Source of the DNA: Thalia democratica
Lineage: Eukaryota
Length of the DNA stretch: 64,000 bases
Assembly: GCA_965202585.1 (NCBI GenBank)
Contig: OZ241827.1
Location: forward strand, 57,970,001-58,034,000
Direction of reading: 5' to 3'
Of this stretch, positions 2,231-54,970 are shown piece by piece; position 1 is the first letter of the stretch; every line of letters starts with the position of its first letter. Position numbers and translations under genes: made by a program. The notes under the pieces are model-generated. The model was not told the DNA's origin, searched no databases, and was given only the letters and a program-made list of their open reading frames with translations.

Positions 2231-5200
2231 CTGGTTAAAATGCTTTGTTATACCATTTTTAGTTTTTAATTTTCAAAATATTATAATAACAAGAAAGATG
2301 TGAAGTATCTTTCTCGTTAACACAATATACAATGAAATAAACTGGTTTTAATCGTTAATAAATGACGTATTGTTTCTGCAGCTTTATTATTACAAACGTA
2401 CTTTTCTGGTCTCGGCAGGTTTTTGCAGTGGGACTTTTGGACGATTGTCCCGTTGTTAGCCAAGCAGTGGACCTGCCTCAGTTGAATTCCAATTCCGTTT
2501 CCGTAACACTTCTTGCTACACTGTTGATTTGTAACTTAGGTTTCACAAAAAGGTTACTTAGTTAATTTGTTGATAAAAAAGAAAGAACTAAAATACATAT
2601 AAGATTAATTAACCAGCTTTTTTGAACTTTTCTACTGAAGCTGTATCAAAAGTAGAATTCTAAAAAATAGGTGAGTATGATAATTTCAACTCTTCAAAGA
2701 AACAACTGAATCTAACCTGTTTCCATGGTTTTGGCTTCCACCCAGGGCACAAGTTACTGAAACAGGTTTCTTTTTGGGGTGGAAGTTGCTGGTTGCTACG
2801 GCAACTTTCCATGGCAACCTGACGAACAGTTCCGTCTGACATGAGAACCACACAGGATATTCTCCTAAATCTTGTTCCATTTCCGCAATCAACTGAACAC
2901 TTGCTCCATTCGTTTGCGTAATATCTGTAATATTATTTGTTGTTAAAACTTTGTTTCTAATAAAGAGGTATTAAACGGTTGTTGTAGTACTTGTTAAAGA
3001 CTTGAACATAACAAATATTTATGTTACTGCTCTTTAAACATAACATTTTTAAATGAAAATACGTTAAAAAGTACGCAATAGTATAATGCATTAATTTTTG
3101 TGGTTTTAAAATCTTATTGTATGTAGATTTTATGCAACTTGTGAAAAGCCTAAAATTAGTTACAAAATTTAAACATAATGCTTATTGCTAAAAAAAATGT
3201 AAAAAAAAAATTATGAAACAAATTGTAGTTTTAGTTCAAAGTATTCTTTTTACTATAGAAAAATTAAATGCGTTAAAAGTTAAATTAAAGCCAAATATGA
3301 GTGATTAAAAAGTCAGCACTTGACATTAAAGACCAATTATTTCCTGTAAAATTTTTAAATAACATGTTTGAACTCTACCCGCCTAATCTAGGTAAGAATT
3401 TAAATGACCTAAATTCGCTGAAAAATGTCCAAAATGCTATGATTGTTTTTCTAACTTCAATTTTTTTTCATAAATGTTTTTATAGTTCAGTATTTATAAA
3501 GGCATAAAGAAATCGCACGTCATTTTATACGTACTCCGCATGTTTATTAAATATTTTTTTCTAGACATAAATAAAACTTGTTTTTATATTGTTTGTAGAA
3601 CAAAAAATAAAATATTTGTTTGTAATGTACTTGTTTGTATGTTGTTTCAATTAAGTTAAAAAAAAGTACCAACTGTGGCTGACAGTCTCTTCTGTTGCAG
3701 GGCCGGGTTTCAACTTGCGGCTTGGCCACTCCTTTGCAGTACCAATCGTCCACCGTCCTCACCCCGTCTTCTATGCACACCAGCTTGTCAGTGATGGTTC
3801 CCGCGTTCCCGCACTTTGCACTGCATTCCGTCAACCCCTCCTTTCGGTACTTGTATACTGAAAATAAATAAGAAAGTAGTTTTTAGACTTTTTCATAACA
3901 CTTTGTTTTTTTGATCGAAAGTTATACTTTTTACGTTTTATCTTAAAAAAAAATTAATGTAACTTACAATATGTTTCTTTAAAAATTGTTATGAAAAGTA
4001 ATATCAACGGAATAAAGCATAATACGAATTTTTAACAATATCAAAAACATTTAAATTTTATTTATCGTATACGTAAAATGATAGTAAAAAAAACCTTAAA
4101 ATAAAGCGGATAGAGCTTTAAAAATTTGAAGCTTCAAAGTAAACTTACTGGTAATTTTCAGTTGAAGACTAGCATCTGCCGATCCTGCTGTGTTTGTTCC
4201 CTTGCAAGAGTAATCGCCAACTGAAACGTTGTTGAAATTGCTGATTGAAAGAACTTTGTCGTCGTGCATCAGTCTGTATTTTGTCGAATTGTTTGTTGTT
4301 TCTATGGCGTTTCCTTTGAACATCCATTCTATTGTTAGTTCCGGATATCCAGTCAATGGACAACCTTTATGTATCATTAACTAAATTATTTATCTTTATT
4401 GATTGTTAAATAAGTTTAGTCAATAATAAAACCTACCCATCATTACAGTAGTGTTCGCTTTAACTTTGTAAATTGGACTATTATAACCGGTTAATAAAAG
4501 TTCTGGAAGTCCATTCATTTCATTTGGTTTGAGAATTACTCCATCATTTGAAATATGAGGCGGGTCTGTTTGTTTCATAAAGTTTTAATTTTATCTTGAA
4601 AAAGCAATTTTTAAGTTAAATGCAGTCAAATTATATTTACTTTTAAATTATTAGAAGAAATAAATACTCTACAGGTATTGTATAGAGTTTAAATATTGTA
4701 GTAAATGTTGTAATTTATTGTTTAAGGTAACAGTATGAAGTCTCACTGACATAAACATTTAATTAAAAGCTTGTTAAGTTTAAGCAAGAGAGAAGTTTCG
4801 GGCCATAAAAAACTTTGTTCGAACCTAACTACTGTTTAATTTCTGATAATTGATGCAATGGTTTAACTATATTTAAATGCTTCATTTCTTAATTTAACAT
4901 ATAACTTCCTTTTGAAAGCAAATTAGTTCTCGTTTAAATATTGTTAAATTTATAAAAATTAGTACTTGATTGTGGTTTTACATTATATGTTTTTAAAGAG
5001 TTATTAATAATTTCAACTTTTAAAAGTTAAAAACTTTACTCACCGACAATTTCTAGTATAGTTGCTTGGTAAGAGCTACCAAAAGGGTTTGTTGCTAAGC
5101 AACTGAAATGTCCCGTATCAGCCAAAGTGGTGGGAAATATTTCCAAAGAATTGTCGATTAAAATTTGCGAGTTTCTTTGAAGACCGTTGACGTCTTTGTT

Positions 5201-8200
5201 CCATTGAACAAATGGTTCTGGTGAGCCTGTAACGTTTATTTTTAATAAAACATAAAACTTGTCATGAAATAAAAAATTTGTCTTTTATATCTTCAACAAA
5301 CTTTGAAATTAATCAATGTTTCTACTGTGTGATTTTAATAAAACACCACTGTTAAAAATTCAACGTTGCTATACATTCAATGTACAAATTAGATATCAAT
5401 TTAATTTTAAACTACAATAGCAGCTGCTTTGGGTGTAATTTTCATTATTTTTGACGTAATGTACAAAATGAAAACTCGTAAAGTGTATGTAATACAACTT
5501 GCGTATTTCTTAATTAAAGATAGTCTGGCGGAAGTTTTGTAATTCTTTGACTTAAGTTCTAAATCTTGCAAGTTTGCAGACTTAATTCAATTACGTGAAA
5601 GTATGATTTGAATTATGAAGTATTTAGTGTATTCAGAAAGCTTAAAGTTAATGTAAAGCTTGCTACTTTTATATTTAAAAAACATTTTATAAACACTTTA
5701 AATAAGTTAGTTAATACTAAAATTAGCCGTTTGAAACAAAGTGAATATTTTAAAACTATAAATAATATTTCACTTTATTAACCTCTGGTCGGGCATCTGA
5801 TAACAACGCGGGTCCCTAATCTCGCCCTGACATGCGACCCAACTGTCACTGTCAAGTCCATGGACACAAAATCGTCAACACCTCTGGTCGTGGACAGAAT
5901 CTTGGGTTTGTTGGTGACTGACAGTGAAACCATTCGGCTGTCGTTTCCCCACTGATTGGTTGCCATGCAAACGTAGTTACCAGCGTCTGACGTTTCCGGG
6001 GTGAAAATTCTCAGGGATCCATCACCGAGCTTGATCATTCTGTTTGATTATTTTCTATGTTTAATTATGAACGATTAAAAATTAAAAACTGATTCAAGGG
6101 GTTAAAAGACTGTTTAATTTTTACAATTCTACTTTTTTTATTGTAACGAGACACATCTCAAAAAGTAACTGAACTTTATATAAAAATTAAAAATGCTCGT
6201 ATAGGTCTAACTTATTATATTATAATGGTAAAACGGCTCGAAATAAATGATAAATAAAAATAAAGATATAAATATTTTGACATCCATATTTTACTAAGTT
6301 TTGAAACTTCTTTTAATCCTATATCAAACAAAAAAGAAACTAATGTGCATATAGGTCTTATTAATAAGTTCACAATATTATAAAAATAAATTAGTATTTA
6401 AAAAAAGACTTAACTTAAAATATCCAATATCAAATGAATTCAGTTTTCGGGTTTTCAATTACCAGGCTTTTAAAAATCGTGTATCCATTCCAAGTAGTAT
6501 AAAAAATGTTAAACAAAAAAACTGTAAAAATAATAAATCAAACCTATCATTATTTCTTATTTCGTGTCCGTCTTTCATCCATTTCACTTCAATAGGGAAT
6601 TCCCCTGTAACCTCGCAAAAAATGGTCACCCGCCGCGACCCAACTACCACCACCGACCCTCCGACGTTGACTATGACGTCATCATTGTACTGAAGGGGGT
6701 CGATTGTCGGCGCAACGTGGATAGATGGCGCCTTTTTCACCCCGTTTTCGTCGGTAGGGGGAGGCGTTGTCGTGACAACCACAGTGGATTGTTTCGAGTC
6801 CAACGGAAGATGCTTTCGTTCTCTGTAGCCTAAAATTAAATTTAAGTTTGAGAAACAGAATATAAAGTATTATGTGTGTTACGTCGAAAGCTAGTTAATA
6901 AAATCAAAAAAAAAACAGATTTATTAGAATTTTTTAATAGCATGAAGTTATTGAAACATTTAATATCAGTTTTTCTAAAAGTTTTAGTAAAAAATTTTAA
7001 GAATTTAATAATCAAAAATAATTGTAAATATTTAATTTGAATAACCTAAAAAGTCAGTTTTAGCAGGCACAATCTCTTGTAGTTGGACGACGCTGTAATC
7101 GTTGATTATGTGAGGTTTCTTTCTAAATACCTTCTTCTTCACAGCTTTAATACCAGCTGCGAGCTTCAGATGCTGCAAATGTTAAAAGTTGAAACGCGAA
7201 GTTGTGTGTACACATGGAATTTTAATACAATTAACTTGTACGATGGAAGTCGCTCCTATGCTAAGAATTTACTGAACAGATATTTAAACTTATTCGGTCG
7301 TGTTGTTACAAACTCAAAAAAAAATATTACCTAATGATTTTTGAAAGTAAAATATTTTAATACTAATTTATAGCAAGTGTTTTAAAATTAAAGGCAACTT
7401 TTTATTTCTTTATGTAACAATCGACAATTAAAAGTCAAAAACTTTTCTATCGCTGTACTTGGTAATGGATTGTTGAAAAGCTTGACCCCCTTCTTGCAAA
7501 TGGTTCTCTTTGACTTGCACTAAACCTTTATGTGATCTGCTGGCAGCTCCTAAAGGTTAATTAGGTACAAGTTAATCTTTTAAATTTTTGATTAATTGCT
7601 TTTCATGTTCCTACAAGCGTTGTCATGCAATGTAAAGCTGTCATACGTAAAGTGACAATATTATTTACTTTTGAACTACTGCATACTTTTATAAAGCTAA
7701 GCTTTTTTATAATTTTCTACTAATAATAGCTGAGAAAAATACTATACAGTTCTTATTTAAACCAAAAGTTTTAACATAATATGAAACTTTTTATTATTAT
7801 AAATTTCTTCAAATATTTTGTTAAATTAGTGTTACAAATTAAGTTAAACTTTGAGGTTTTGTTAGGTTACAAAGGGTTACGTAATTCAAAAGCTCGTTTA
7901 AACCATGTTAAGTGAATGAATTTAAAGAGAAACAATAACTGATAATGCGTTTTTAAGAACTTTTTTACAAACCCGCTTTAGAAAGCTCTTAAATTTTTTA
8001 TTTATAATGCAGTTTTCATTAAAAACATTGTATATCATTTATCAGCATGTAAATCACGTTTTTAATTAAAATAATAAATTTTCGAGAAGCTGCTGTTTGC
8101 TTTAATTGAACCGTACACAAAATTACAAATGACGTAATTTGTATACACAAAGAGCTGATTCAGAAATATACTGAAGTCAAATGTTTTTTCCCAATCTTTA

Positions 8201-11200
8201 ATTTAAATAACTACTGAATTTTCAAGCTAACTTAATTTTTGACATTTTAAAAAGCATCTAAGCGGTATTAAAATAGATTAAACTATTATTAAGGTAGTTT
8301 AGTAACAAAATTATAATTAAAAATAAAAATTGTTTTACTAACTCAGCCCTAAAACGCAAAAACAGTCACAAATTTTAATTAAGTTAGTTTAAATTTTGCT
8401 TTTAAAAATCAATTTTATTAAAAGGTAATAAAGTGTAAACAATTTAAATAAACTTTTGTTGATAAGAACGAGCAGCCTGCTCCTTCCCTGTCCTCCCTGG
8501 CACTTCACCATCTGCCTCCTCCTCATCCTGATCTTGCTCATCTTCAGGTTGCCCCCCTTCGTCACCATCACCTTCCCCCGCCTTCTCTTCACCCTCCGCT
8601 TGTTGACAAACCACGCGTGTTTTGATGGCGCACCGCTGAGTAAAAATAGATTTAATTAGCTGAAAAAAAAACATTTAGGACCGCCTCAATGTAAAAATAG
8701 CTTTAATTAGCTCCAAAAGGAAGACTGATGTCCGAAAATATCGCCCAATAACCAAACATTACAAAATTTTCACTACAAAACTCATTATAGCGATATGTGA
8801 CTCCTTTGAAGCCAAAATAGCAAAAGTTATTTGCAAATATTTGTTTATTTTAAAATTTAAAACTAGGCCACCGTCTGAAGTTTTCGGGTAAACAGGAGGC
8901 GAAATTTCCTCTGATTGATGTCACCTTGTTTGCCCACTTGCCATCAAATCGTCAAATGAGCAAACAAAGCGGCAGATAATCAAAGCTAATTGCCTTCATC
9001 GTTCTCTCCCATTTGCCGATAAGTAAACTTTATTTTGTAGCGCATTGACCTTGAACGTGACGGTGTTTATTGTTTGCATTAAAACTCACTTTTTGAAGCT
9101 GCACTTGGCGATGATGGTTGTTCCAGGGATGACGAAGGCCTTCAGCGGGAGGGTCAGTTGGAGGGGGGTTTTTCTTGCCGATTTTTGCACGAATACTCTC
9201 AGCCCTCCGTTGATCTTGGTCGGGTTGGGCCTTCTTTGGATGATTGTTTGCCCTTCTTGATTCGAAGCTGTAAAATACTTAATTAGAACAATATACAAAT
9301 TACTAAGACGTAGAAGACTTCAAAAGGTAATGAATTATATTTAATTAGACACAAGGTTGACTCACCCAAGCTGGACATACATTTCCTGTGCAGTGAGCAA
9401 CTCCTTTTCGCCGGAAGTGCTTTCAGGTTTTTGCAGTAAATCGATTTCGCACTAATTTTGTGCCAATTTCCGTTTTTCATGTACATGCAGACAACTTTTC
9501 TTGTTTGCCAACCTTTTCGTAACTTTGTGCAGTCGCCTTTGCACTAAAAAAAGATTTTAGCTGTGCATTTTTGAGTTTTTGAAAGTCATTAAAAAAGTAA
9601 ATTAACAAAGATAATGTTATTTATGAGTTATAGTAATAAATGCTCAGTAGTAACATTTTTATATACAATATTTTAAAAACTGTTTTAATTGTTGCTAATT
9701 ATGTCAATTACAAGCAAGATACTTATTAAATTAAAAAATATACATACTTCACTCCAATCTTCCGCAGTGAATTTCGGTTCGCACTCTTTAACTTTGCACT
9801 TTCTTCTTGTCAATCGATACGGTTTGTTCTGCGAACAGTATTTTGAAGGCACCTGAATCAATTTGCCTGTACCTGTTCTTTGCTTGCACAGGAACGAAAT
9901 TTCATGAAACCCGTTGCCACATTGCTCAGAACACTGAAATGTATTACTTTTTTTCAATGAAAAATTCTCAAAATAGGTGAGTAGACTAAATTACTTGGCT
10001 AAGCTCAATGAATGGTCTTAGTCTTTTTACCTTGTCAAATGTTCAGATCTCGCTTAAATTGGTTTAATAATCTAAGAAAAAAATCTTACTATCAAGAATA
10101 TATTTGGTATGTTAATAGGCTTACAAGACTAACCTTCCCGAGACCAGACTTCATCCAGACAGGGGGACAGGTGGCAAACCCGCAAGGTTCAACCGACTGA
10201 GGTTTTGGGTTTGGGCACATGATTTCAGGCATGACGTCATCGTTGGTGACGTGGTGAGTGGAATTTTCAGGCATGAATTTGCACGTGACAGATCTTTTTC
10301 TGATCCCTCTGCCGCACATTTTCGAGCACGAACCATACTGACCTATTTCCCATCTGAAAAATTATTTGAAGGTTTTTAATATATTTTTAGTTTAATATAT
10401 TATTTTAAAGTTATTATAAGGAGAGCCTATTGAAAATATTAAAAACAGTTTAATTTAACTTACTTTTTATTTTTATTTATCAAAAATGTTACTTTAAAGG
10501 CTATGTCTTAATTATAAACATAGATACATTCAGTTTTTTTAAAGACACTAGTATAATAACTATTAAAAATTCAAACTATATCATTTAGTTTTTTTTTTCT
10601 AATCAAGTTTTAATGAAATTTTTTAGTTATGTTTAGATAAAAACAAATAAACTTATTTCATACAAACATACCAAATCAGATTTTTTTATTTAAATTCAGC
10701 TTAAGTATGAAAAACCCCAAAACGAAGTGACATCAAAAATTACTTTGAACAGGTAAACTTGTTTTATAATTATTAAATGCTTTATTACACTATCGGCTCG
10801 TTTGTAGCTTATGCAAACATTAATTTTATAATAAGTATTTTAAAGTTTAATGAGTTTATGCGAAGAAAACATTTTAAAATTTACTGAAATTAATCCTCTA
10901 TATAAACAAGTTGTGAAGTGTGTTTTTTTCTCATGTACTACTTTGTTGGTTGTTATTGTATTTTAGCATTTCTAATTACATTAAACTTTTATGTTAAGCG
11001 TATAACTTCCCTCATTTATAACATGATGCTAAAATGATATCACAGTAAAAAGTTTTCATTTGACACTATAAAAACCTTGTAGCAATCAAGTTTTTTATTT
11101 GGTACAACATAATTATTTTAAAGTTAAATAGTTATGACAATACTAAAAACTGTTTAGAATTGTTTCTTAAAGGTACTAACCTAATTGGGATACTTTGACA

Positions 11201-17200: not shown

Positions 17201-20200
17201 GTATAATTGCAGTAATTTTGCAAAAAAAGGCTCCAATATTTTGATGACGTCCTATCTTATTTTGGGTAGTTTACTTTTTAAAATTATACAAAAAAGTTAC
17301 TCAAATACGTCGCGCTGAAAAGTAAATGACACAATCTGGCTATATTAAAAGTCGTACTTCTAGTTTTTGGAGCTTTATTTTTGTAAACACAAGAATAAGT
17401 GTCTCTGCCAATAAAAAAACACACTTTCATTTTTATGTGATTTTTAATTGTAAACAAATACAACCACATGCATAGAAATATAAAGAAAACTATTTAAATT
17501 TTTTAAATGTAAAATTGTTTAATTTACTTATCAATGCGAGGTATTTTGTAATTTTTTTGCACAATTTTTAAGAGAAAACTACCCAAAATAAAATATGACG
17601 TCATGAAAACATTGGATCTTTTTTTTTTTCCAAAATTGCTGCAACTAAAAGTATTCAATATTTAAAATGACCCATAAAAAGTCCCACCGGTTTAAAATGC
17701 TCATTAATGTAAAACCACAAAGTTATCTTAATAATTTAGCTCTCAAAAATTTCAACATCTTATTTTTGCGTTACCGTTCATTTTATTTTTGATATTTTTA
17801 AACCAAACTTTGTAAATGATAGATGTCAATTATAAAAACGTGTTAATTTGATTATAACACTCTACCGTGCAAAGCTAATAGATGATATCGACGAGTGTTT
17901 AAGTGTTAAATGATCGAAATAGATCAAAAGATAAAAACACATAAGAAACGCTCTTTCAAATGTTTTTTATGCAAATATTTACATTTGATTATCTGTTTGC
18001 AACTATTTGTAGTTTAAGCTCGCTCTGGTATTCTAATCACAAAAAAAAAAAAAGCTCTTTGTTTTTTATTTTTTTGTTGCAATTTGTTTATCCATTTTTC
18101 TTAAACATATTTGTTCTATTCAAATATTAGATAAGAATTCTATATTCAAAACTTTCTTTGAATCGACCAACCTGAGTAAGTTTTAAATAATAAATAAACA
18201 AAAAAAAACATACTTTTTTAATAATATAGTTCAACTATAAGTTTAATTACAGTTTTTTTTTGTTTTAAAAGTTACATATTTTTTAAATATTTATTAAAAC
18301 CAGTTAGAAACACAATTAAAGATATTTTTTTGTAAATAATTTTATTCAAGCAACGTCAAATTGTTTACAACTCGGTCATACTTTTTTTTCTTGTTTAGAA
18401 AGTATTTTAAAAAGTATTTCTTTTTGAAATTAAAATAATAGTTAATAAAAACAAAATATATTTTCCATCTTAAAAAACAACAAACTAACTGGGCTCTGAC
18501 TTTACGCGATGCCTCGTTCACCAGTTCAACAGAACTCCTTTTATTATTAAGCGGGAAACTACTTTCTAATGGAAGCCTTGTACCTGCATTCCCGCTTTCA
18601 ACCCCCGAGCAGTTTGATTGCGGCTTGTTGGCTGTGGAACAATCGCCGGTTGGTTGCCAAGAAACGGCGGCGACAATAAGGTTGCCGTGGAGACGCGGTT
18701 CGAGCGAAATGACAAAAACGATGACAAATTTGTATAATAAAAATTTGCTGCTACTTCTAGCTGCTGACATTTTTTTCACTTTTTTGATATCATCTGACTA
18801 CTTGAACAATTACTCGGTGCTCTGCTTTGTTGGATCTCTGCCTCATAATTTGTTGATAAGCATGCTCGTATACTTTTTTACATTCAACTAGGTTTTAATC
18901 GTTGAAATGGTGATTTTGATTGATGAAAATTAATTAACAACCAGTTGGGCAGAGTCCAAGTTTTTATGCTATTTTCTAATTATGCTACTCTTACTAATAA
19001 GTTTGATAAAGCAGGAAACTAATGAGATTAAAACTGACTACATTGTAACTCTTTGTTTATTGGCGTCTATTCGTTAATCTACGATGAAAAATTTATTAAT
19101 TGTTTAACTATTTTTGTGTACTTTGCTTTGCGATCGATTTTAATAAGTGCAAATTTTCACATTGTCTAATGAACACTGTCATAGCTATTGATGTGTCAGC
19201 AATTATTTAGTTTGTAATAAATACTATAAGTTCTGCTTAGATTTGCAAAAATCATTCATAGCAAGTAAAGCTTGCATACAAAACAGGTAAATTAAATTAC
19301 TTTAAGGTGTAGTCAAATATACTTGTAGTAAAAAAATAATTCAAGTCTTTCTAGGTAAAAAAAGTCCAAGTTAATAAAAGCTTATCACTTATAAAAAAAG
19401 CTTACTAAAACATATTACACTAATGATTTCATTTCTTTTTTCTTTCTGTTTTTAAGTTTTTAACGAGTTAAAATCCGATAAATACATAACTTAATAGAAA
19501 ACTTTTACTGGTATTGTGATTTAACCTTTTTTGATAGTTTGACTAATGAAAATTCGTCTTAAAGAAATTATAAGAGAAGTTTCTAGACTACTCTTTATTA
19601 ATCCAGGTTGAATTAAAAAAAAATAATATTAAAACAATACTGATTTAAGAAGCACTATAAAAATGTATTACAGTCTTTGAACTTTATCTACACTCTAAAA
19701 CAAACTTAAAAAAGAAATGCAATTTTTTAGCTTATCAGCCTAGCAAAAATTGTTTTACTCAAAAATTTTCTTGTCTAACTCTGCTCGTACACAAGTTCCT
19801 ATGCAAAGCCTTACATACTCAAAATAATTTGTGAGCAAAGAAGTTCTAGCCTTTTTCCTTTACATGGAAAGTTATCTCATGTTCGCTATTTACCTGTACT
19901 ACAAATGCTGTTATTTTTCTACAATTTTTGGTCTAAAACAATTGATGTAGTTTCATAAAGTTTTAATCGTCTTGTTGAATTATAAAGAAACTTTTGTTTT
20001 GTGCTTTAAGAAAATTTTTATGTACATAGCTGTCTTAGTTTTATATAAGAGTTATAAAACTAAATTAGTAGTTTATGTACGAAAGTAGTTCGATTATATT
20101 ACAAAAATCCCTTCTTTTAACATTATAAACTTTAAAATAAAAGTGTTAATTATTTACTATAAAACGGTCGTCGTTTTAGTTTTTTAAATTTACTAAAGTT

Positions 20201-23200
20201 TTTTGTTTTGTTGAAATTTTAACTACGTATTGAAATATCTACTGTATAACTAAAAATAATAGTTTGTTCTAAATGTTTTTATTAAGTAAGTCAATTAAGG
20301 GCATTAGGAATATAAACTTATCAATGTTTACAATATTTTTTTTATAAACTTAATGTTTTTTAACAAAGTTGAGAAATTGGTATCGAAACGCTTTAAGTTA
20401 AAATTAAGCCTCTTGTTAAGGATTAACAAAAAGATTGTAGTTGAGAACTGTTATAATTGGTTACGTAATTCAAAATAAACTTAAATGTTTAAAGTTTTAA
20501 GTGTAAATATAAACATTAAGAAGCAGACAAATTGATGAAACGTAATATTTGAAATAAAAACTTCAAGTTTATTTTAGATTGCTTTCAGAACATTACCGGC
20601 AGCATTTTAGGTCTTATAAGCTGACTCAAAATAAAACAGATTCAAAGGAAACCCTTTATCCCTGCTTTGCCGAACAAAAGATTACTAAATTGCCTACATA
20701 AAAGGTATCGTTTCAAGGCAAAGTCATAAATATATTGAGGTGCAACACTTCAAAAGGATGCTTGAGAAAAGTTTTGAGTGATTGAGTTTTACCAGTTTTG
20801 AACTCCTCTTAGCGTTGACAGCTTCTTACGTATTAGCTCGCTCAATAAGAGTCTCTAAAGAAGCGAGATAAGATCTTAACAACATCAATCATAAGAGTTG
20901 AAAGTCCCGATAAAAGGAGACGTACTGAAGCATACTAACGCCTATATTTTACGCCTAAAAGATAGTTTAGATAAACTTACATGACAAGTTGAGTAAATGT
21001 TGAAGAAACTTTTGAAAATATTTCTTTAATAGTCCTTATGAGCTTTGTTTTACACATTTTAACAAATTCTAGACTTAGATGGATATCATATTTGATGAAA
21101 ATTTTGATGTCAACGAATTTGTCAAACTAAAGGTATTCTTTTTTGATTTCACATGATTTGTTCTCTCTATTTAAGTTTTGAGTTACTTTTTAAAGAAATA
21201 TTTGTGCTGCTTTCCCTTGTCTATTGTCGATTCAATTGCGTTTCACTTGACTTAGTTTGATCGTAATGATAGGTAATTTAATTTTAGTAAGGTTAAGAAA
21301 GATACATGATACCTGAATACTGTTACTTAAGCAGTGCGCGTTGAAAACAGGCCAATTACACGGCTCTTATGTTCCCATCAGAACACTTCTACAACAAATT
21401 AAGTCATTTTTTACCTGTTTTCTCTTTTTGACGGGCAACCCAGAAAACCGTGCTAACGTTTCTCATGCAATTTTGTTTCACAAAATAGAAAAAACGCCAT
21501 CAAATAATAAATCCAACGCAAAAAAAAGTTACCTGGTTTCGTTTTCAGTTTTTGGTGGAACGGGACAGGGGTCCCTCTTGCAGGTGGCCAGCTTTGGAAG
21601 GGGATGTTTCGATCGATCGCATCTGCTGTCTGATGCAAGGCGATTTGTGAGGTTGTCGTAGCAGAACGGTATTGATACGGACATTCCTATGAAAATACAA
21701 TAAATGAAGTTTTATAATTTTTGATAAAGCTGTTAAAGCTGTTTTTAGTAAGAAGTAATTTAAACATTATTTCAAACTCTAATATTTACAAATAAAATAT
21801 TTAGTTTTTTTTTACAGCCCAATGAATGCTCGAAAAAAGCACAACTTTCGTAATGCGTTGTTTACAAACAAAAACTTTTTAATAAGGCTGTAATTTCAGA
21901 TAAAACCTTCAATGTCCAAGTAAAATTGTGTTGACAGTGTCAATTCATCGCCATTACTAGCATACTTTCACGGCTTGAAAACAGGTTATGGGCTTCATCC
22001 TTTTAAAGTCGGATCAAAGCCGCGATGTGTTTGCAACCCGATACGATGGAGGTATTTTCGCAGGTGCCGACCCAACAACAAACAGGTGCCAGCGTATCGA
22101 GTTGTGCCGAAAATATCGAATTATCCGCTCGTAATTGCCTCGCTTCATGCCGCCAACAACGCTAATTTGTCCGAACGACAAACGTTTTTGAATATCTGCT
22201 AATCCCTTTTCGCCCGGTCTAAGCCCTTGCTTAAACTAAGGTTTTAATTTCACATTGCTGGAGGAGTTTTTGTCTGAAATTGTGCTAAAGTTCAAACGTT
22301 AAAGTGGACAATTTGGTGTCTGGACACGCAAACTTGGGTACAGACAAAAGGTAATGGCGTGCAGAAAAAGTGCTAATTGTATAATTTGTCGGATGTTAGA
22401 AAAAATTCTGGCTTTTTGCCTTTTTTTACACAAAATGGCGCAATAAACTTTATTTTACGTTATAAGTAAAAATATTATTTAACTGTCTTATAGTAGTTTT
22501 CATTGTGCATTTGAATTTACGTAATAGCAAAGTATATTTATATTTAATTAAAAGATTTAAAACTATCGTCTATCATAAGGTTAAATAAAAATTATATTTT
22601 TTATAGAATAACAAATAGTATGTTTAGGATAGAAATATTTCAACCAATTAAAAATATAAAAAGATGCTTTACTTTTTTTCTGTTAAAACAACTTAAAACA
22701 GTAATTTTTGGCCATATCATTAAAATTAAATTTGAGTGGTAAAACGTTTTAGAGGTTACAAGTGTTTACTTGTTGCAAAATGTTATACACGGATTTCTGA
22801 TCAAATAAGTATTAGTGAAAAGTTTCTAGGTAATTAACTTATGCTACAAAGCTAAATTAGTTTAAGGTTATCACAACACATAAAAATTTACTAAGTAGAA
22901 AACAAAATGTTACATCCATAAAAATATATAACTAATTTATCATCGATTTAAGTTATTTTTTAAATTTTAAACTTAAAAGTAAATTCATGGCGGCTAACTA
23001 AGCTATTAGTGTTTAATCTTCTAAAACCTTTTTTTAATGTGTGATAAAAATTAACAAGCTAAGCTGTGTGCTACGCATCGATTTTTTTAAAATATAATTT
23101 AGTTATATACATATGTTGTGATGATTAACGATTGAAATAAACTCAAGATCAAACAATTATTTTTGCCTATTTATTTCATATACTAAACAGATTTATAAAA

Positions 23201-32200: not shown

Positions 32201-35200
32201 GTTTTCTTATACTTATATTAAAAGCAAGTTTTATAGGTTTACACAAGTGGCAACACATAGAGAGTCATAGGGGGTGTGGAGCAAAATAAAATGCCTTGTA
32301 TATAGTTATCACTCATACTTCAATACTTTATTTTTAAAGAATCAACATAACTGCATATTTTCTTATTAAATTCAATAAAATTAGAGGTGATTTAAATTGC
32401 TGTTTTCCCTTTAGGACGTTTCCCGCGTCATTTCAGATGTTTTAATTTTTTGCAGATACGTAACAGCTACTTCCGTGCTTGGAACTAAAACAAGTAACTA
32501 TTAAAATAGTTAAAATACTACTAGCAATATAAAAAAGTGTAACTTACGATGATTAAGGAGTTGAATACAGTTTAATAGTCTTGTAAACCGATTTAAAATT
32601 AAATTTAAGTATTTTCTAAACGAGCACTTTGCAAAACATTATCAATCATTATGTTGTTTATACTTTTTATACAATTGTAAACACATTAACTTCGCATCAC
32701 TGTCTCTATGATTTAGAAATAACTTCTTTTTTCTACGTTATTATTTAATATAATTTTCAACATTGTTAAGAGATTGAAAGAATTTTCTTTTGATTTGCAA
32801 TTAGATATAGTTCTTTTTTATTTCTCGCAATATCACGCTTTTTTTATAATTCAAAATACATTTTTTTAAAATTCAAAGTTAATTAAATTCATGCAAAACG
32901 TATCATGCATAAATTTTAAAAACATTTCTTTATAACTAAAAAATATATTTAATACTAACGATACATCTTTGTTTTAATTTTCAATGCTGATAAGTAATCT
33001 TTTGACTGTTTTTTTTTGTGAAACTTTTAAATTTATAAAAAACTGCTTTTATAACCTATGTATATAATACCAAGTACTTGCATGTTCTTCAAAGAACAAC
33101 GAGCACAGTTATATAATTTCTTACTATGTACCACTATCGCTTGATGACGTCACAATACCGCTGATCAATCTGCATGAACTTCCGTCTCCTCCGCAAACTC
33201 CGCATTCGTCATAAACTTCTCCTCCGTACAAAACTCCGTCGCATCCCGCTCGCTGTGGAGTATTTTTTTTTTTTTTTTTATGTAATAAAAAGTTTCAATA
33301 GTAATAAATAGCTTGTTATGTTAATTTAATGTAAAAAACAAATTTAGAAACTCATTAAAGATTTCTTTTTACTTTTATGTACTGAATATAGTTTTTTAAA
33401 CTAAAAGCTGAAAAATACAGTAATAATTAAACTTATACTTACTTCCATACTTTAAATTTTCAAAATAAATTTTATACATTTTGCATAATTAATTCATTAA
33501 AAAAAAAGCAACAACCGAAGGTGTAGTAGATCAAAGGTTTCTCATAAATTATAAAATCATGTTTAAAGTATAACTTTGTTAAAGTAAAAAACATCCTGAA
33601 CACAAGTGTTCTTAGCATTTGTTTATGGCTATCAAGTTTCTGTCTGACTCAAGATGACTACAACAGGAAAGTCTTTATCAAAAAAAGTAGAACATACAAC
33701 CAAAAGTATCTGGTTATGCTATATTTTAACAACTTGCGCAAATACTATTGTTTGAACAGCATTCGGTATTGTTTAGTTAGAATTACTCAAAAACAGCTTC
33801 TTTCTAAACTGTTCTTTTTTCTCACTGTATTTTTTACACAATGTTTTCAGCTACTACTGAAGTTATACACAAGAGTAATCGCGTTTTGTGATTACAAAAC
33901 GAAAAACCATGAAATCGGTATGTATGATAAACACACACCAGTAAAATTTATTTTTGCTGTTCCCAACTTGGCTATGGCTTATTCTGATTAATTTAATTTC
34001 GACCTCTGTAACACGTTTTAAACCGTGTTAAAGCGAAAAAAATCTCAACTCATTGCAATTGTTTCTGAATTTCCGCTAAAATAACTTCAGTTCACGACTT
34101 AATAAAGCAAACATTTACATTAACAAATCACATATGCAGACCACATAGACATGTAAATTGCAAAATAACATGATTATTATCGCATTTATGTTAAACAAAT
34201 GATTTAGCAAACGAGCCAAAAAAATTTTGTTTCAATTACAGTTTTTCTTTTTGTTTTTTTTTTAATTTTTGCTTAGAACCAAGTTTTCCTTTTCATCATT
34301 TGTTTAAAATCGTAAACTACTCCAACTCTTTATTCATAATTTTATAAGCATAATGATAAAGTAATGTGTTATTTTATACTTTGTGAACCATATAAGGTGA
34401 ATGAATTATATGACAAAAAAGTTAATGATGGGAACAATAATCACGTGAATGATGCGATTTATTACATTTTCAATTTTCACTAACCAAGATACACGCAATC
34501 TCTTTATGAACGCTGTATTGTTGCTCATTATACGCAACCACAGCTTTTTTGTTTTAAACAACCAAAAGAACAAAAAAATCAAACAATGGAGATTACAGTT
34601 GTCAAGTTTATTTAAAGCTAGAAGCACAAAGCAGGCTAATTAAACTGACGAAATTATCGACAGAATTAAAAAATTCCGAACGGTATTTTATTGAAGAGAG
34701 CTGGATTTTTTTGCTTGGAAAAAATCCTCAAATATTTCTCAACTTGACCTCAACCGACCCAACTTGATATAAAAAGACGAACTTTTCGTTTCAAGTGCGC
34801 AAGGAAATCCCAGCATTTTATAACAAACTGTTTTCATAATTGACAAAGCACTAAATGCCAAAGGAGAAAATGTGAGCTTAGTACTCCGTCTAATCTAGAC
34901 AACTGAAAATTCAATGGAAGTTTGTTGGTGTCCGTGATGAGACTGATTAAAAAACTCGTTTATTTTTATACTGTTTCACATTCAAGAAAAAAACAAACCA
35001 TACAATTGTTTAAAACATGATTTTTATACGTTGTTTAATGTTGTGATGAGAAGCGTTTTTGAAACTTTATTAAAATATATTTATGTAAAGAAAATATTAA
35101 AGCCTATCTTTAAGTATTAAATTTATTTGTTCTACTTATTTATCTTCTCACTTTGCATTTTCCTTCGATGCAAACCCCGAAACTCTTTTTCGCCTGGCAA

Positions 35201-52330: not shown

Positions 52331-53680
52331 TTATTATTATTAAGTTTATTGTCCAACGAAGGACCTAGGCATTAAAACCTAAGCCACTTAAACTGAAAGA
52401 CATTAACATAAAAAGAAAAAAAAAAAAAATTACAGTGATTAAATAAACATAAACATAAAACTTATACAAGACACAAACTGAATAAATTAAAACTTTCACA
52501 ACCAAAATATTCAACGATTCCAAAGTCATTAATCTCCAATTATACATTACAAAGCAACAAATCCCTGTAACAAGCATCTCCTGTCAAAATTCTTCAGAAC
52601 CTGTCTTCATCTTGCAGAACATTGATCTCAGCTACTATTTGCCATTCGTCATGTTTTCAAAGTTTCACCACGGCAAATTCAGTCAAAAATAACTTCAAAA
52701 ATGTGGCAGCAACAATTCACAAATCTAGCTTAGGAATCAACTGAGTATCCAATAATTTCAAAATCTAAAGCCCCAAGCACATTAACAATAGACCTTCCAA
52801 AAATCAAAATTGAAAAGTACCTAAAACCTACAAGGGGAAGGTGTAGCTTACAGATAAACTACCAATAAACTACATACCACACACCAAATCAATGGCTAAA
52901 GAGATGAATAAAACTAATTACTTATAAATTTTACTGGTAAATATTTTATTTAAATCAAATCTTTTTAAGTTTAATCGAAAATGTTTAAGATTTTTGCACG
53001 ATACTAGTTCATTTGGAAGTTTGTTCCACATTTTTACCGAATTATAGAAAAAAGATTTGTACCAACCAACATAGTTGAAATTATATTTGCATGTATATTT
53101 TCTATTATTACCTCTGAGTGAGTAATTATTTTTATAAGGTTTAAAGAAAGTTTGAGAATCAATATTAGTTTCATTGTTAATCAGTTTAAAAAAGTAATGA
53201 GATCAAATTAAAGTCTTCTGTACTGTAAAGTTTTTATATTAAGCTTTATTAGTCTGTCTATGTAAGACGTATATGAAATGTTGCACCGATTAAAGATTAA
53301 TCTCGTAAATTTTCTTTGAATAGATTCTAGTTGGTTGGTGTCTTTTATAGAATATGGAGACCATAAAGGTGTGTTGTATTCCATCTTAGGACGGTTGTAA
53401 ACTAGATACAGTTTTTTAAGAATTACCAAATCCGTAGATATAACGCTTTTTAGAATTTGAAAAGATAAAATTGATGCAGTACGGTAAATATAGTTAATGT
53501 GATGGTTCCATTTTAAATTATATGATATAAAAATTCCAAGGTCTTTAAATACTTCAGTTTTAGGTAAGATTGCATTGTTTATTTTAAAATCAAACGTTGG
53601 AATAGGTGTACTTTTGCGAATATTCAAAACATGACATTTGCTGGGATTTAGGTTTAATCTCCTTTCTTTTAACAATTTTT
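52331..53680 (-). mobile_element. 5'-truncated, decayed CR1/L2-type LINE (RT C-terminal/thumb region plus 3' tail)
   Basis: NPSKC…KDLGI…LKWNHHI…RPKMEY…WSP…LESIQRKFTR…RRL*FDLI, then frameshifted …MWNKLPNE…; AATAAA plus (TAA)4 at 52331-52350. Confidence 0.85.
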
Positions 53681-54970
53681 TTGTTAAATTAAAAAAGGCT
53701 ATTCTTCAAACTAACTTACAAAGTATTTTTTCTTACTGTCATAAGCAGCCCAAGCACATAAGTAAACTGTACCCTGAATTATGAAACTTTACAGTACATT
53801 ATTCAAAACAATTATTTAATCGATAACTAATAGTGTTTAGACTCCTTAAACACTAATACACTAAAATTAGTATTAAAAATAAACATTAGTCACCTAAAAG
53901 CTTATTGTAAGCTTATTGCGAGGTAAATTTTGAAAACTTTAACATAAAACAAGTTTGTTTACACGAATATTTTGCTTTTCAATTTAAAAAGAACAATTCT
54001 AAAAATATTAGTTTTAGGTTTAGAGGTAAATTTTTGTAAAACTTTTGATATGAAACAAATGTACTTACTTAGGGTTTCACTAAAAGGTGACATGGTCCAT
54101 TTTAGATAGTTTTAACACGTAAATAGAAAAATATGGAGAAATTTTTATTTTATAGGGAATAGCGAGCAATACTTACGTTTGTTTTATCAAAACACTATAC
54201 ACTTTAGTTTGATAAGAAATTAAAAAACTTATTTAGAATTATTAAATGTTCAAACTGTCGTAGTGAACACTTGATAAATTTATTTAAAAAGCGAATGTTG
54301 TGGAGTGTTTTGCGCAGATAATTGTTTACGTGCTTCTAGTATTAAAAAAACAAACATATTTTTATAAAAAAACAAACATATTTTTATATAAGGAGTAAAC
54401 TTCGTTTGAATTAGGATAAAATCAGCGCGTTTTCTTAAAAAAGGCAGTTCTAAAAACCATCCGTCACTAAACATTGTTAAACTGTGGGAAGTAACGTCGT
54501 AGAGAATCTATCACTCAAGATATTAAATCAATAGTTGCTATCGACGCACAAGGGACTAAGAGTTCGGAAATTCACTACGATTGTTGGGCGATAGTTAGTA
54601 TAAATTCGAAGAAACTGTTAGTCTTTTGACTATTGTATTATTTTTTAATCACGTGTTGTAGTTTTTGCATGCACTTATTTCTCTTATAATTTTGTAAATA
54701 AATTTCACAACTAAAAAAGAAAAATATTTTAGCTTAAACCTACTTTATTAAAATCATATATGTCGAAACATCATAATAAGAATAAGGATAATTATAAACC
54801 GTTGTCTTTACAACAAATCACTACGCGCTCGAATAATAAGAAAATGGATACCAGGGCAGATACAGCAGCTCACAAAACTAATAATATAACTTATTAAAAA
54901 CCTTTACTGAAGTTCCTTTTTAAGTAAAAGTTACTGCAACTGTTAACGATTCACTCTATAGTATAAGAAT

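Follow-up and report, generated by a model that had tools for sequence, protein, structure and literature searches.

A candidate alternative first exon in intron 17 of a punctin-type gene of Thalia democratica

The question raised by this locus is whether a punctin-type gene of Thalia democratica is read from two starting points, so that a short secreted protein would be made beside the long one. The window, by which we mean the whole stretch of 64,000 nucleotides that was analyzed, covers positions 57,970,001 to 58,034,000 of contig OZ241827.1 (GenBank assembly GCA_965202585.1); coordinates given below are those of the window unless another contig is named, and the gene lies on the minus strand. 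Punctin/ADAMTSL proteins organize the extracellular matrix, and in Caenorhabditis elegans the choice between a long and a short isoform sets synapse identity. A sequence-only reading of the window had placed a first exon encoding a signal peptide inside intron 17 and had likened the predicted product to the short punctin MADD-4S. We consider it probable (roughly 0.68) that intron 17 holds an alternative first exon together with a likely promoter, and that these give rise to a short secreted isoform alongside the long one.

Position of the exon and its splicing in RNA

Intron 17 extends from 21532 to 10354 (approximately 11.2 kb) and separates exon 17 (21533–21686, minus strand), the last exon specific to the long isoform, from exon 18 (10135–10353, minus strand), which starts at 10353 and is preceded by TTTTTCAG. 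Within the intron, an ATG at 18770–18768 (minus strand) is preceded by AAAAAAA, with A at −3, and an in-frame TAG is found upstream of it at 18800–18798. From this ATG the frame is open for 93 codons and two bases, up to a CA|GTTAGT donor in phase 2; the last base of the exon is 18490, its coding part (18490–18770, minus strand) measures 281 nt, and the intron side of the donor (18481–18489, minus strand) reads GTTAGTTTG. The donor of exon 17 at 21533 is likewise in phase 2. Joining the alternative exon to exon 18 gives ...RAQ-WEIGQ, the beginning of a TSP1_ADAMTS repeat (Pfam, E 8e-11), which would be the first such repeat of the short form. The start codon, the 93 codons, the upstream stop, the phase-2 donor and the joint are all present in the sequence as the earlier reading had described them.

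The longest ATG-initiated open reading frame (ORF) of intron 17 is that of this exon, at 142 residues on read-through as against 61 for the runner-up. The chance of finding 92 stop-free codons is 0.006 given the composition of the exon itself and 0.0001 given that of the intron, and the exon forms a GC island (47% vs 27%). The plus strand opposite the exon (18442–18888) is open as well, for 149 codons; since the splice direction gives minus-strand RNA, this second frame probably results incidentally from the coding one.

Contigs of four runs were aligned to positions 17500–21900, X1 and X3 being marine metatranscriptomes. Within this interval the X1 and X3 contigs are confined to 18490–18797 and, in X1, to exon 17 (21533–21687), the sole other contig being a low-depth X1 piece at 20725–20800 (depth 3.4). 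The rest of the intron being nearly empty in both runs, neither DNA contamination nor intron retention explains the signal. Splicing was read from the loose ends of contigs at the exon and its flanks rather than from a joint across the 8.4-kb junction. The contigs break exactly at the donor and continue past 18490 into 30 letters that correspond to the start of exon 18 (in reverse complement), and the same letters appear at the spliced loose end of exon 17 at 21533. Exon 17 and the alternative exon thus use the same exon-18 acceptor, which means that long and short forms both exist, and the alternative exon joins exon 18 directly, with no adaptor exon between them. A 34-nt adaptor exon, considered for the 58142k copy, is likewise unnecessary, given this direct joint and the 281-nt, phase-2 exon of every copy.

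The spliced contig of X3 carries exactly the eight differences that mark the Tara-lineage DNA contigs L039 and L040, together with their GCT-CA exon end, and the junction therefore exists in a second, related lineage. Both transcription of the exon and its splicing from 18490 onto the exon-18 acceptor are thereby shown at the level of the gene family and in this sister lineage. The junction from 18490 to 10353 that the sequence-only reading had predicted is in this respect borne out by spliced RNA contigs; the letters private to the window copy occur in none of them. That exon 17 is missing from X3 was considered as a sign of independent expression and rejected, as the X3 contigs come from the diverged lineage, the exon 17 of which may be below the 92% similarity threshold.

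Run X5, the kind of which is unrecorded, has RNA-like coverage, with a depth of 70–300 in exons and 0–6 in introns. Its contig at 18761–18935 is unbroken and without a joint, and a 5′ leader of at least 18771–18935 (minus strand) precedes the coding part. None of the contigs on 17500–21900 showed a joint between the exon 17 donor and the alternative exon.

Copies in the paralogue cluster and in related lineages

Together with roughly 1 kb of flanking sequence, the exon is present eight times in the genome, in copies that are about 90–95% identical and that each occupy the intron 17 of a punctin-like paralogue in a recently expanded tandem cluster. Seven are found on contig C2 at 57.68–58.15 Mb, in both orientations, and the eighth on contig C761; the loci of the cluster are L001–L036, and the exon dS among the paralogues is about 0.1–0.18. 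Copies of exon 17 are located upstream of the start exon in all eight cases, including C761, and a copy of exon 18 lies 7.5–8.8 kb downstream of it in all seven C2 copies. The 281-nt length, the ATG and the GTTAGTTT donor are retained in all eight, the donor also in the Tara-lineage contigs, and the frame is open in seven; at the protein level the paralogous exons are 87–94% identical. The window copy differs from the family consensus in six letters (four of the changes being non-synonymous), among the fewest of any copy, and is not degenerate. G54C and E90K are private to it, R9K is common to two other copies and R79S to one other, and an A takes the place of C at −2 of the ATG.

Two additional copies of exon 18, at C2:57865174–57865430 (plus strand, L025) and 57896796–57897073 (minus strand, L024), are 93–95% identical and have neither exon 17 nor the start exon nearby; they are probably either partial 3′ copies of the gene or short genes that stand alone. 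Intron 17 further contains three islands (19797–19896, 20658–20755 and 17769–17953) where the eight copies are 0.93–0.95 identical and indels are rare or absent. RNA contigs do not rise above background on these islands, which may be regulatory elements or young tracts of gene conversion. At 17647–17793 the X6 contig depth reaches about 3,000, compared with a few hundred around it, which points to a repeat family inside the intron.

Divergence among the eight copies is 0.052–0.056 over 18935–18490, without indels except for one gap column in the leader (which diverges by 0.056), whereas the flanks diverge by 0.10–0.165 with many indels and the value jumps to 0.135 directly past the donor. Constraint thus coincides with the transcribed exon.

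Relatives outside the genome were sought by HMMER/phmmer among 1.8 billion representatives and by a word-index search, which together revealed three clusters only (P0001, P0002 and P0006), all of them on short contigs from marine metagenomes in which the sequence continues past the donor. The third phmmer match, P0003, is to all appearances an unrelated protein made up of repeats. Among the JGI metagenome contigs, a scan with a 35-nt invariant pattern and a scan by peptide alignment were both empty. In the L038–L041 group 6 nt are inserted in frame and the donor is retained, and the intron becomes unalignable some 40 nt further on. The distant contig L037 shows 65% protein identity, with the hydrophobic core exact and the motifs WQP, DCS and ESGNAGT kept, and has a GT in phase 2 at offset 257 of its ORF. 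Its indels measure 3, 6 and 3 nt in the ORF vs 2, 6, 2, 14, 5, 2 and 3 nt in the leader, and across all lineages those of the ORF are 3, 6, 3 and 6 nt; two of these in-frame indels fall within triplet repeats and so weigh less. Between the in-genome consensus and that of the L038 group the fixed differences are four non-synonymous and five synonymous (dN/dS 0.24, binomial p 0.04).

Putative promoter, predicted product and alternative explanations

Upstream of the leader lies a conserved block (18936–19120, minus strand) that is a putative core promoter. In comparison with L037 the interval 19110–18902, which takes in the 5′ end of the leader, shows a single indel and an identity of 85%, exceeding that of both the ORF (77%) and the leader (18901–18771; 66% with seven indels). 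A TATA-like box at 18968–18961 has the sequence CATATAAA in the majority of the copies and in two relatives; it is found about 30 nt upstream of the end of the X5 contig, and the X5 depth declines from 22 to 2 to 0 across 18.82–19.26 kb. The 5′ end most likely lies near 18.94–19.05 kb, where transcription would start from a promoter within intron 17, and an independent internal promoter would fit both the conserved upstream block and the absent joint with exon 17. The most conserved part of the block (18916–18937, minus strand) contains the motifs TTAATTAATT and CATCAATCAA, which are homeodomain-like and PBX/Hox-like and may be regulatory sites. Both are invariant in those outside-genome relatives that reach them, and some in-genome copies vary within CATCAATCAA. 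The results of a sigma-70 promoter and terminator scan, which uses a bacterial model, were disregarded.

The proposed transcript would begin with an exon of about 450 nt, made up of a leader of about 165 nt and the 281 coding nt, and would be spliced from 18490 onto 10353, the acceptor that exon 17 uses. Translation from the ATG at 18770 would yield an N-terminus resembling a signal peptide and then a unique Ser/Gly/Asn-rich segment of about 55–70 residues. Next would come the shared C-terminal half with three TSP1 repeats, immunoglobulin (Ig) domains and four TSP1 repeats.

The domain content of the host gene, which is ADAMTS-like and of the punctin type, was determined with Pfam. PF19030 matches 11 exon ORFs, eight of them above the curated cut-off, and its best E-values lie between 1e-11 and 3e-11. 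Downstream of exon 18 are two further exons with thrombospondin type 1 repeats (TSRs), exons with I-set Ig domains (6462–4099) and four TSR exons (3550–1993), the I-set matches between the TSR blocks being at 6462–6869, 5781–6047, 5039–5284 and 4099–4380. Three TSR exons, Ig exons and four TSR exons are thus what the sequence-only reading had claimed for this part of the gene. More TSR exons are found upstream in the long gene, as is an ADAMTS Cys-rich match (ADAMTS_CR_3 at 33127–33294) that at 21.5 bits is barely over its cut-off of 21. No spacer module was matched among the ORFs scanned, and a crude scan for Cys-rich ORFs, covering positions 1–2300 of the window and the interval from 12 kb to 2 kb past the 3′ end of the gene, did not find a PLAC exon. 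The short product would accordingly be composed of seven TSP1 repeats plus the Ig block.

Its N-terminal region, MSAARSSSK, has a charge of +2, or a net +3 up to the hydrophobic core when K14 is counted, and the core FVIVFVISL has a mean Kyte-Doolittle value of 3.36. This core is invariant in L037, and paralogue substitutions within it stay hydrophobic. Eukaryotic signal peptides combine a positive n-region with an h-region of 7–15 hydrophobic residues and small residues at −3 and −1; signal peptidase might cut here at VIS|L or at AVS|W, in place of which L037 has AAA|W. A crude rule for signal peptides, demanding a positively charged n-region and a 9-residue window with a mean Kyte-Doolittle value of at least 3.3, was passed by one of 100 ATG-initiated ORFs of at least 40 residues in the window, namely this one. 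The N-terminus is thus signal-peptide-like, and the short product is probably secreted. The remainder of the peptide is rich in Ser, Gly and Asn, and a Pfam search with all 93 residues gave no family. Residues 58–64 (18586–18600, minus strand) read ESGNAGT in all copies and in the distant relative, and ESGNGGT in contig L038; the acidic residue followed by Ser-Gly could, we speculate, be a site of glycosaminoglycan attachment.

The two dibasic motifs that had been noted near the end of the peptide are present (NNKRS and RKVR). RKVR, which stands two residues before the Trp of the TSR, is peculiar to the window copy and reads REVR in the seven other copies and the Tara lineage; KR or KRR occupies residues 77–79, 14 residues earlier, and the tail of L037 differs (RKLGRK). 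Translation, secretion, a promoter of its own and later cleavage are steps that we infer for the short form, and a cleavable pro-segment, as suggested by the RxxR and KR motifs by themselves, is doubtful.

Several observations weigh against a short isoform made from this gene, and they are best considered together with the explanations that they favor. At 18534, 18611, 18633 and 18745, where the window copy differs, the RNA contigs all read the consensus or paralogue letter, the X1 contig being identical to the family consensus; the spliced exon-18 letters match five paralogues and have two mismatches in 30 to the exon 18 of the window. The TATA-like box of the window copy reads CATAAAAA, and its private changes G54C and E90K are non-synonymous. 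This is what would be seen if the exon family were real and the copy in this window silent or minor, its internal promoter being weak or off and no short isoform coming from this gene. We hold this to be somewhat unlikely, as the copy has lost neither its ATG nor its open frame, donor or length of 281 nt and shows just six differences from the consensus, and the same TATA variant is present in two other copies. In Logan contigs, moreover, nearly identical paralogues are merged and rare variants are lost, so that the lack of window-copy letters neither shows nor excludes its use, and we infer that this copy is transcribed. Contigs likewise cannot show a transcription start, and an acceptor-like TAGTCAG stands 24 nt before the ATG. 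The exon might have no promoter of its own, being either a cassette exon reached from exon 17 or the target of spliced-leader trans-splicing at the AG 18795–18794 in the long pre-mRNA. This is very unlikely: no joint leads from 21533 to 18.8–19.1 kb, the exon 17 donor goes directly to exon 18, the X5 contig is unbroken across 18794 to 18935 with no loose end listed at 18794, and 19110–18902 is more conserved than the leader, as is expected of a promoter. The cassette-exon version was rejected on the pattern of the RNA contigs. AT-rich genomes do yield many Phe/Ile/Leu-rich ORFs, but a chance intronic ORF, with an RNA signal due to a retained intron or to contaminating DNA, is hardly credible here, coverage of the flanking intron being near zero and the contig ending exactly at the donor with exon-18 letters. 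That pattern at the donor refutes both the chance ORF and intron retention, which are also opposed by the ORF and signal-peptide statistics and by the pattern of conservation.

The remaining objections concern the protein. Among the eight in-genome copies the start exon has a dN/dS of 0.70 and its variable sites are evenly spread by codon position (13/17/15), whereas the corresponding values are 4/4/14 and 0.15 for exon 17 and 3/0/13 and 0.08 for exon 18. Its synonymous divergence, 0.07, is below the 0.11–0.18 of these true exons; synonymous sites are conserved as well, which indicates constraint at the nucleotide level. No known RNA explains this conservation, since a search of 17500–21900 against Rfam, with E up to 1, gave only two matches, both at chance level. 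The leader is conserved as well as the ORF and holds four upstream ATGs (−113, −93, −76 and −23) that open ORFs of 1, 6, 18 and 5 codons, and a lysine (K14) interrupts the hydrophobic region just before the core. In one copy, 57827k (C2:57827381–57827659, L006/L013), a TAA is found at codon 2 of an otherwise intact exon, and as no later in-frame Met is present the short form cannot start there. Together with the missing Pfam family, such data would suit an exon that is spliced and yields no working protein, a non-coding or regulatory 5′ exon belonging, for example, to an unproductive transcript or to one controlled by upstream ORFs. We regard this as unlikely on the following grounds. In all copies the frame has the only phase compatible with exon 18; between lineages, the indels of the ORF preserve the frame and those of the leader do not; the changes fixed between lineages have a dN/dS of 0.24; the distant relative has retained the hydrophobic core, WQP, DCS and ESGNxGT; and if the ATG at 18770 is set aside, the transcript offers no plausible start for a TSR protein that is to be secreted. 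Conservation of the frame, which the sequence-only reading had named as a check, holds for the indels and for seven of the eight copies, and fails in 57827k. We interpret the alternative first exon as coding and as moderately constrained at the level of the protein, which is usual for signal and linker peptides, and relaxed or unpurged changes in young duplicates, plus some extra constraint at the nucleotide level, would account for the pattern within the genome.

Comparison with known punctins

The madd-4 gene of C. elegans produces long and short isoforms by means of alternative promoters, madd-4B possessing its own exon 1 and ATG (PMC11385328). MADD-4S is the C-terminal moiety, with seven TSP1 repeats, an Ig domain and a PLAC domain (PMC9083331, PMC13142758), and ADAMTSL1 and ADAMTSL3 have been named as orthologues of punctin (PMC13142758). 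The Thalia locus resembles madd-4B/MADD-4S/PunctinS in that a first exon with its own ATG lies inside a long ADAMTS-like gene and leads into shared C-terminal exons, and the predicted short form, like MADD-4S, is without the Cys-rich and spacer part and combines seven TSP1 repeats with Ig. By comparison with MADD-4B, the first exon here has no detectable sequence similarity, the phmmer search of 1.8 billion representatives having returned close relatives only. The layout also differs, being three TSRs, several Ig domains and four TSRs here as against four TSRs, one Ig and three TSRs in the short form of C. elegans, which in addition has the PLAC domain that the crude scan did not find here. 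Unlike madd-4, the present gene is one of at least seven tandem paralogues. We consider the likeness to MADD-4B to be one of architecture, and not of homology or demonstrated function. The activity by which MADD-4B organizes synapses comprises binding to neuroligin and UNC-40/DCC and the clustering of GABA receptors. Of the long/short architecture claimed in the sequence-only reading, the two splice forms are seen in the RNA of the family and the number of TSRs equals that of MADD-4S, whereas use of the window copy is presumed and homology of the exon with that of MADD-4B is lacking.

The vertebrate proteins ADAMTSL1 and ADAMTSL3 (punctin-1 and punctin-2) share with this gene the TSP1_ADAMTS repeats, a putative ADAMTS Cys-rich module and the Ig domains between TSR blocks. 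A limited literature search revealed no C-terminal short form made from an internal signal-peptide exon for either of them, nor any outside nematodes. It is conceivable, but quite unlikely, that the long/short punctin design is old, or has evolved repeatedly, in genes of the ADAMTSL1/3 type and was kept through the eight-fold expansion in this planktonic animal, the short forms having a function of their own, possibly in the cell-cell or synaptic matrix. Were this so, the unusual constraint at synonymous positions would stem from a regulatory element that overlaps the coding exon.

An internal start exon that is supported by RNA and present throughout the family presents the same gene design in a distant marine animal. 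For experimental work the exon supplies isoform-specific sequences for in situ probes, reporters and knock-downs, and in annotation two transcript models are needed for each paralogue that carries it. Upstream of the gene, at 53211–53705 (minus strand), an ORF of 165 residues resembles part of the reverse transcriptase of a non-LTR retrotransposon.

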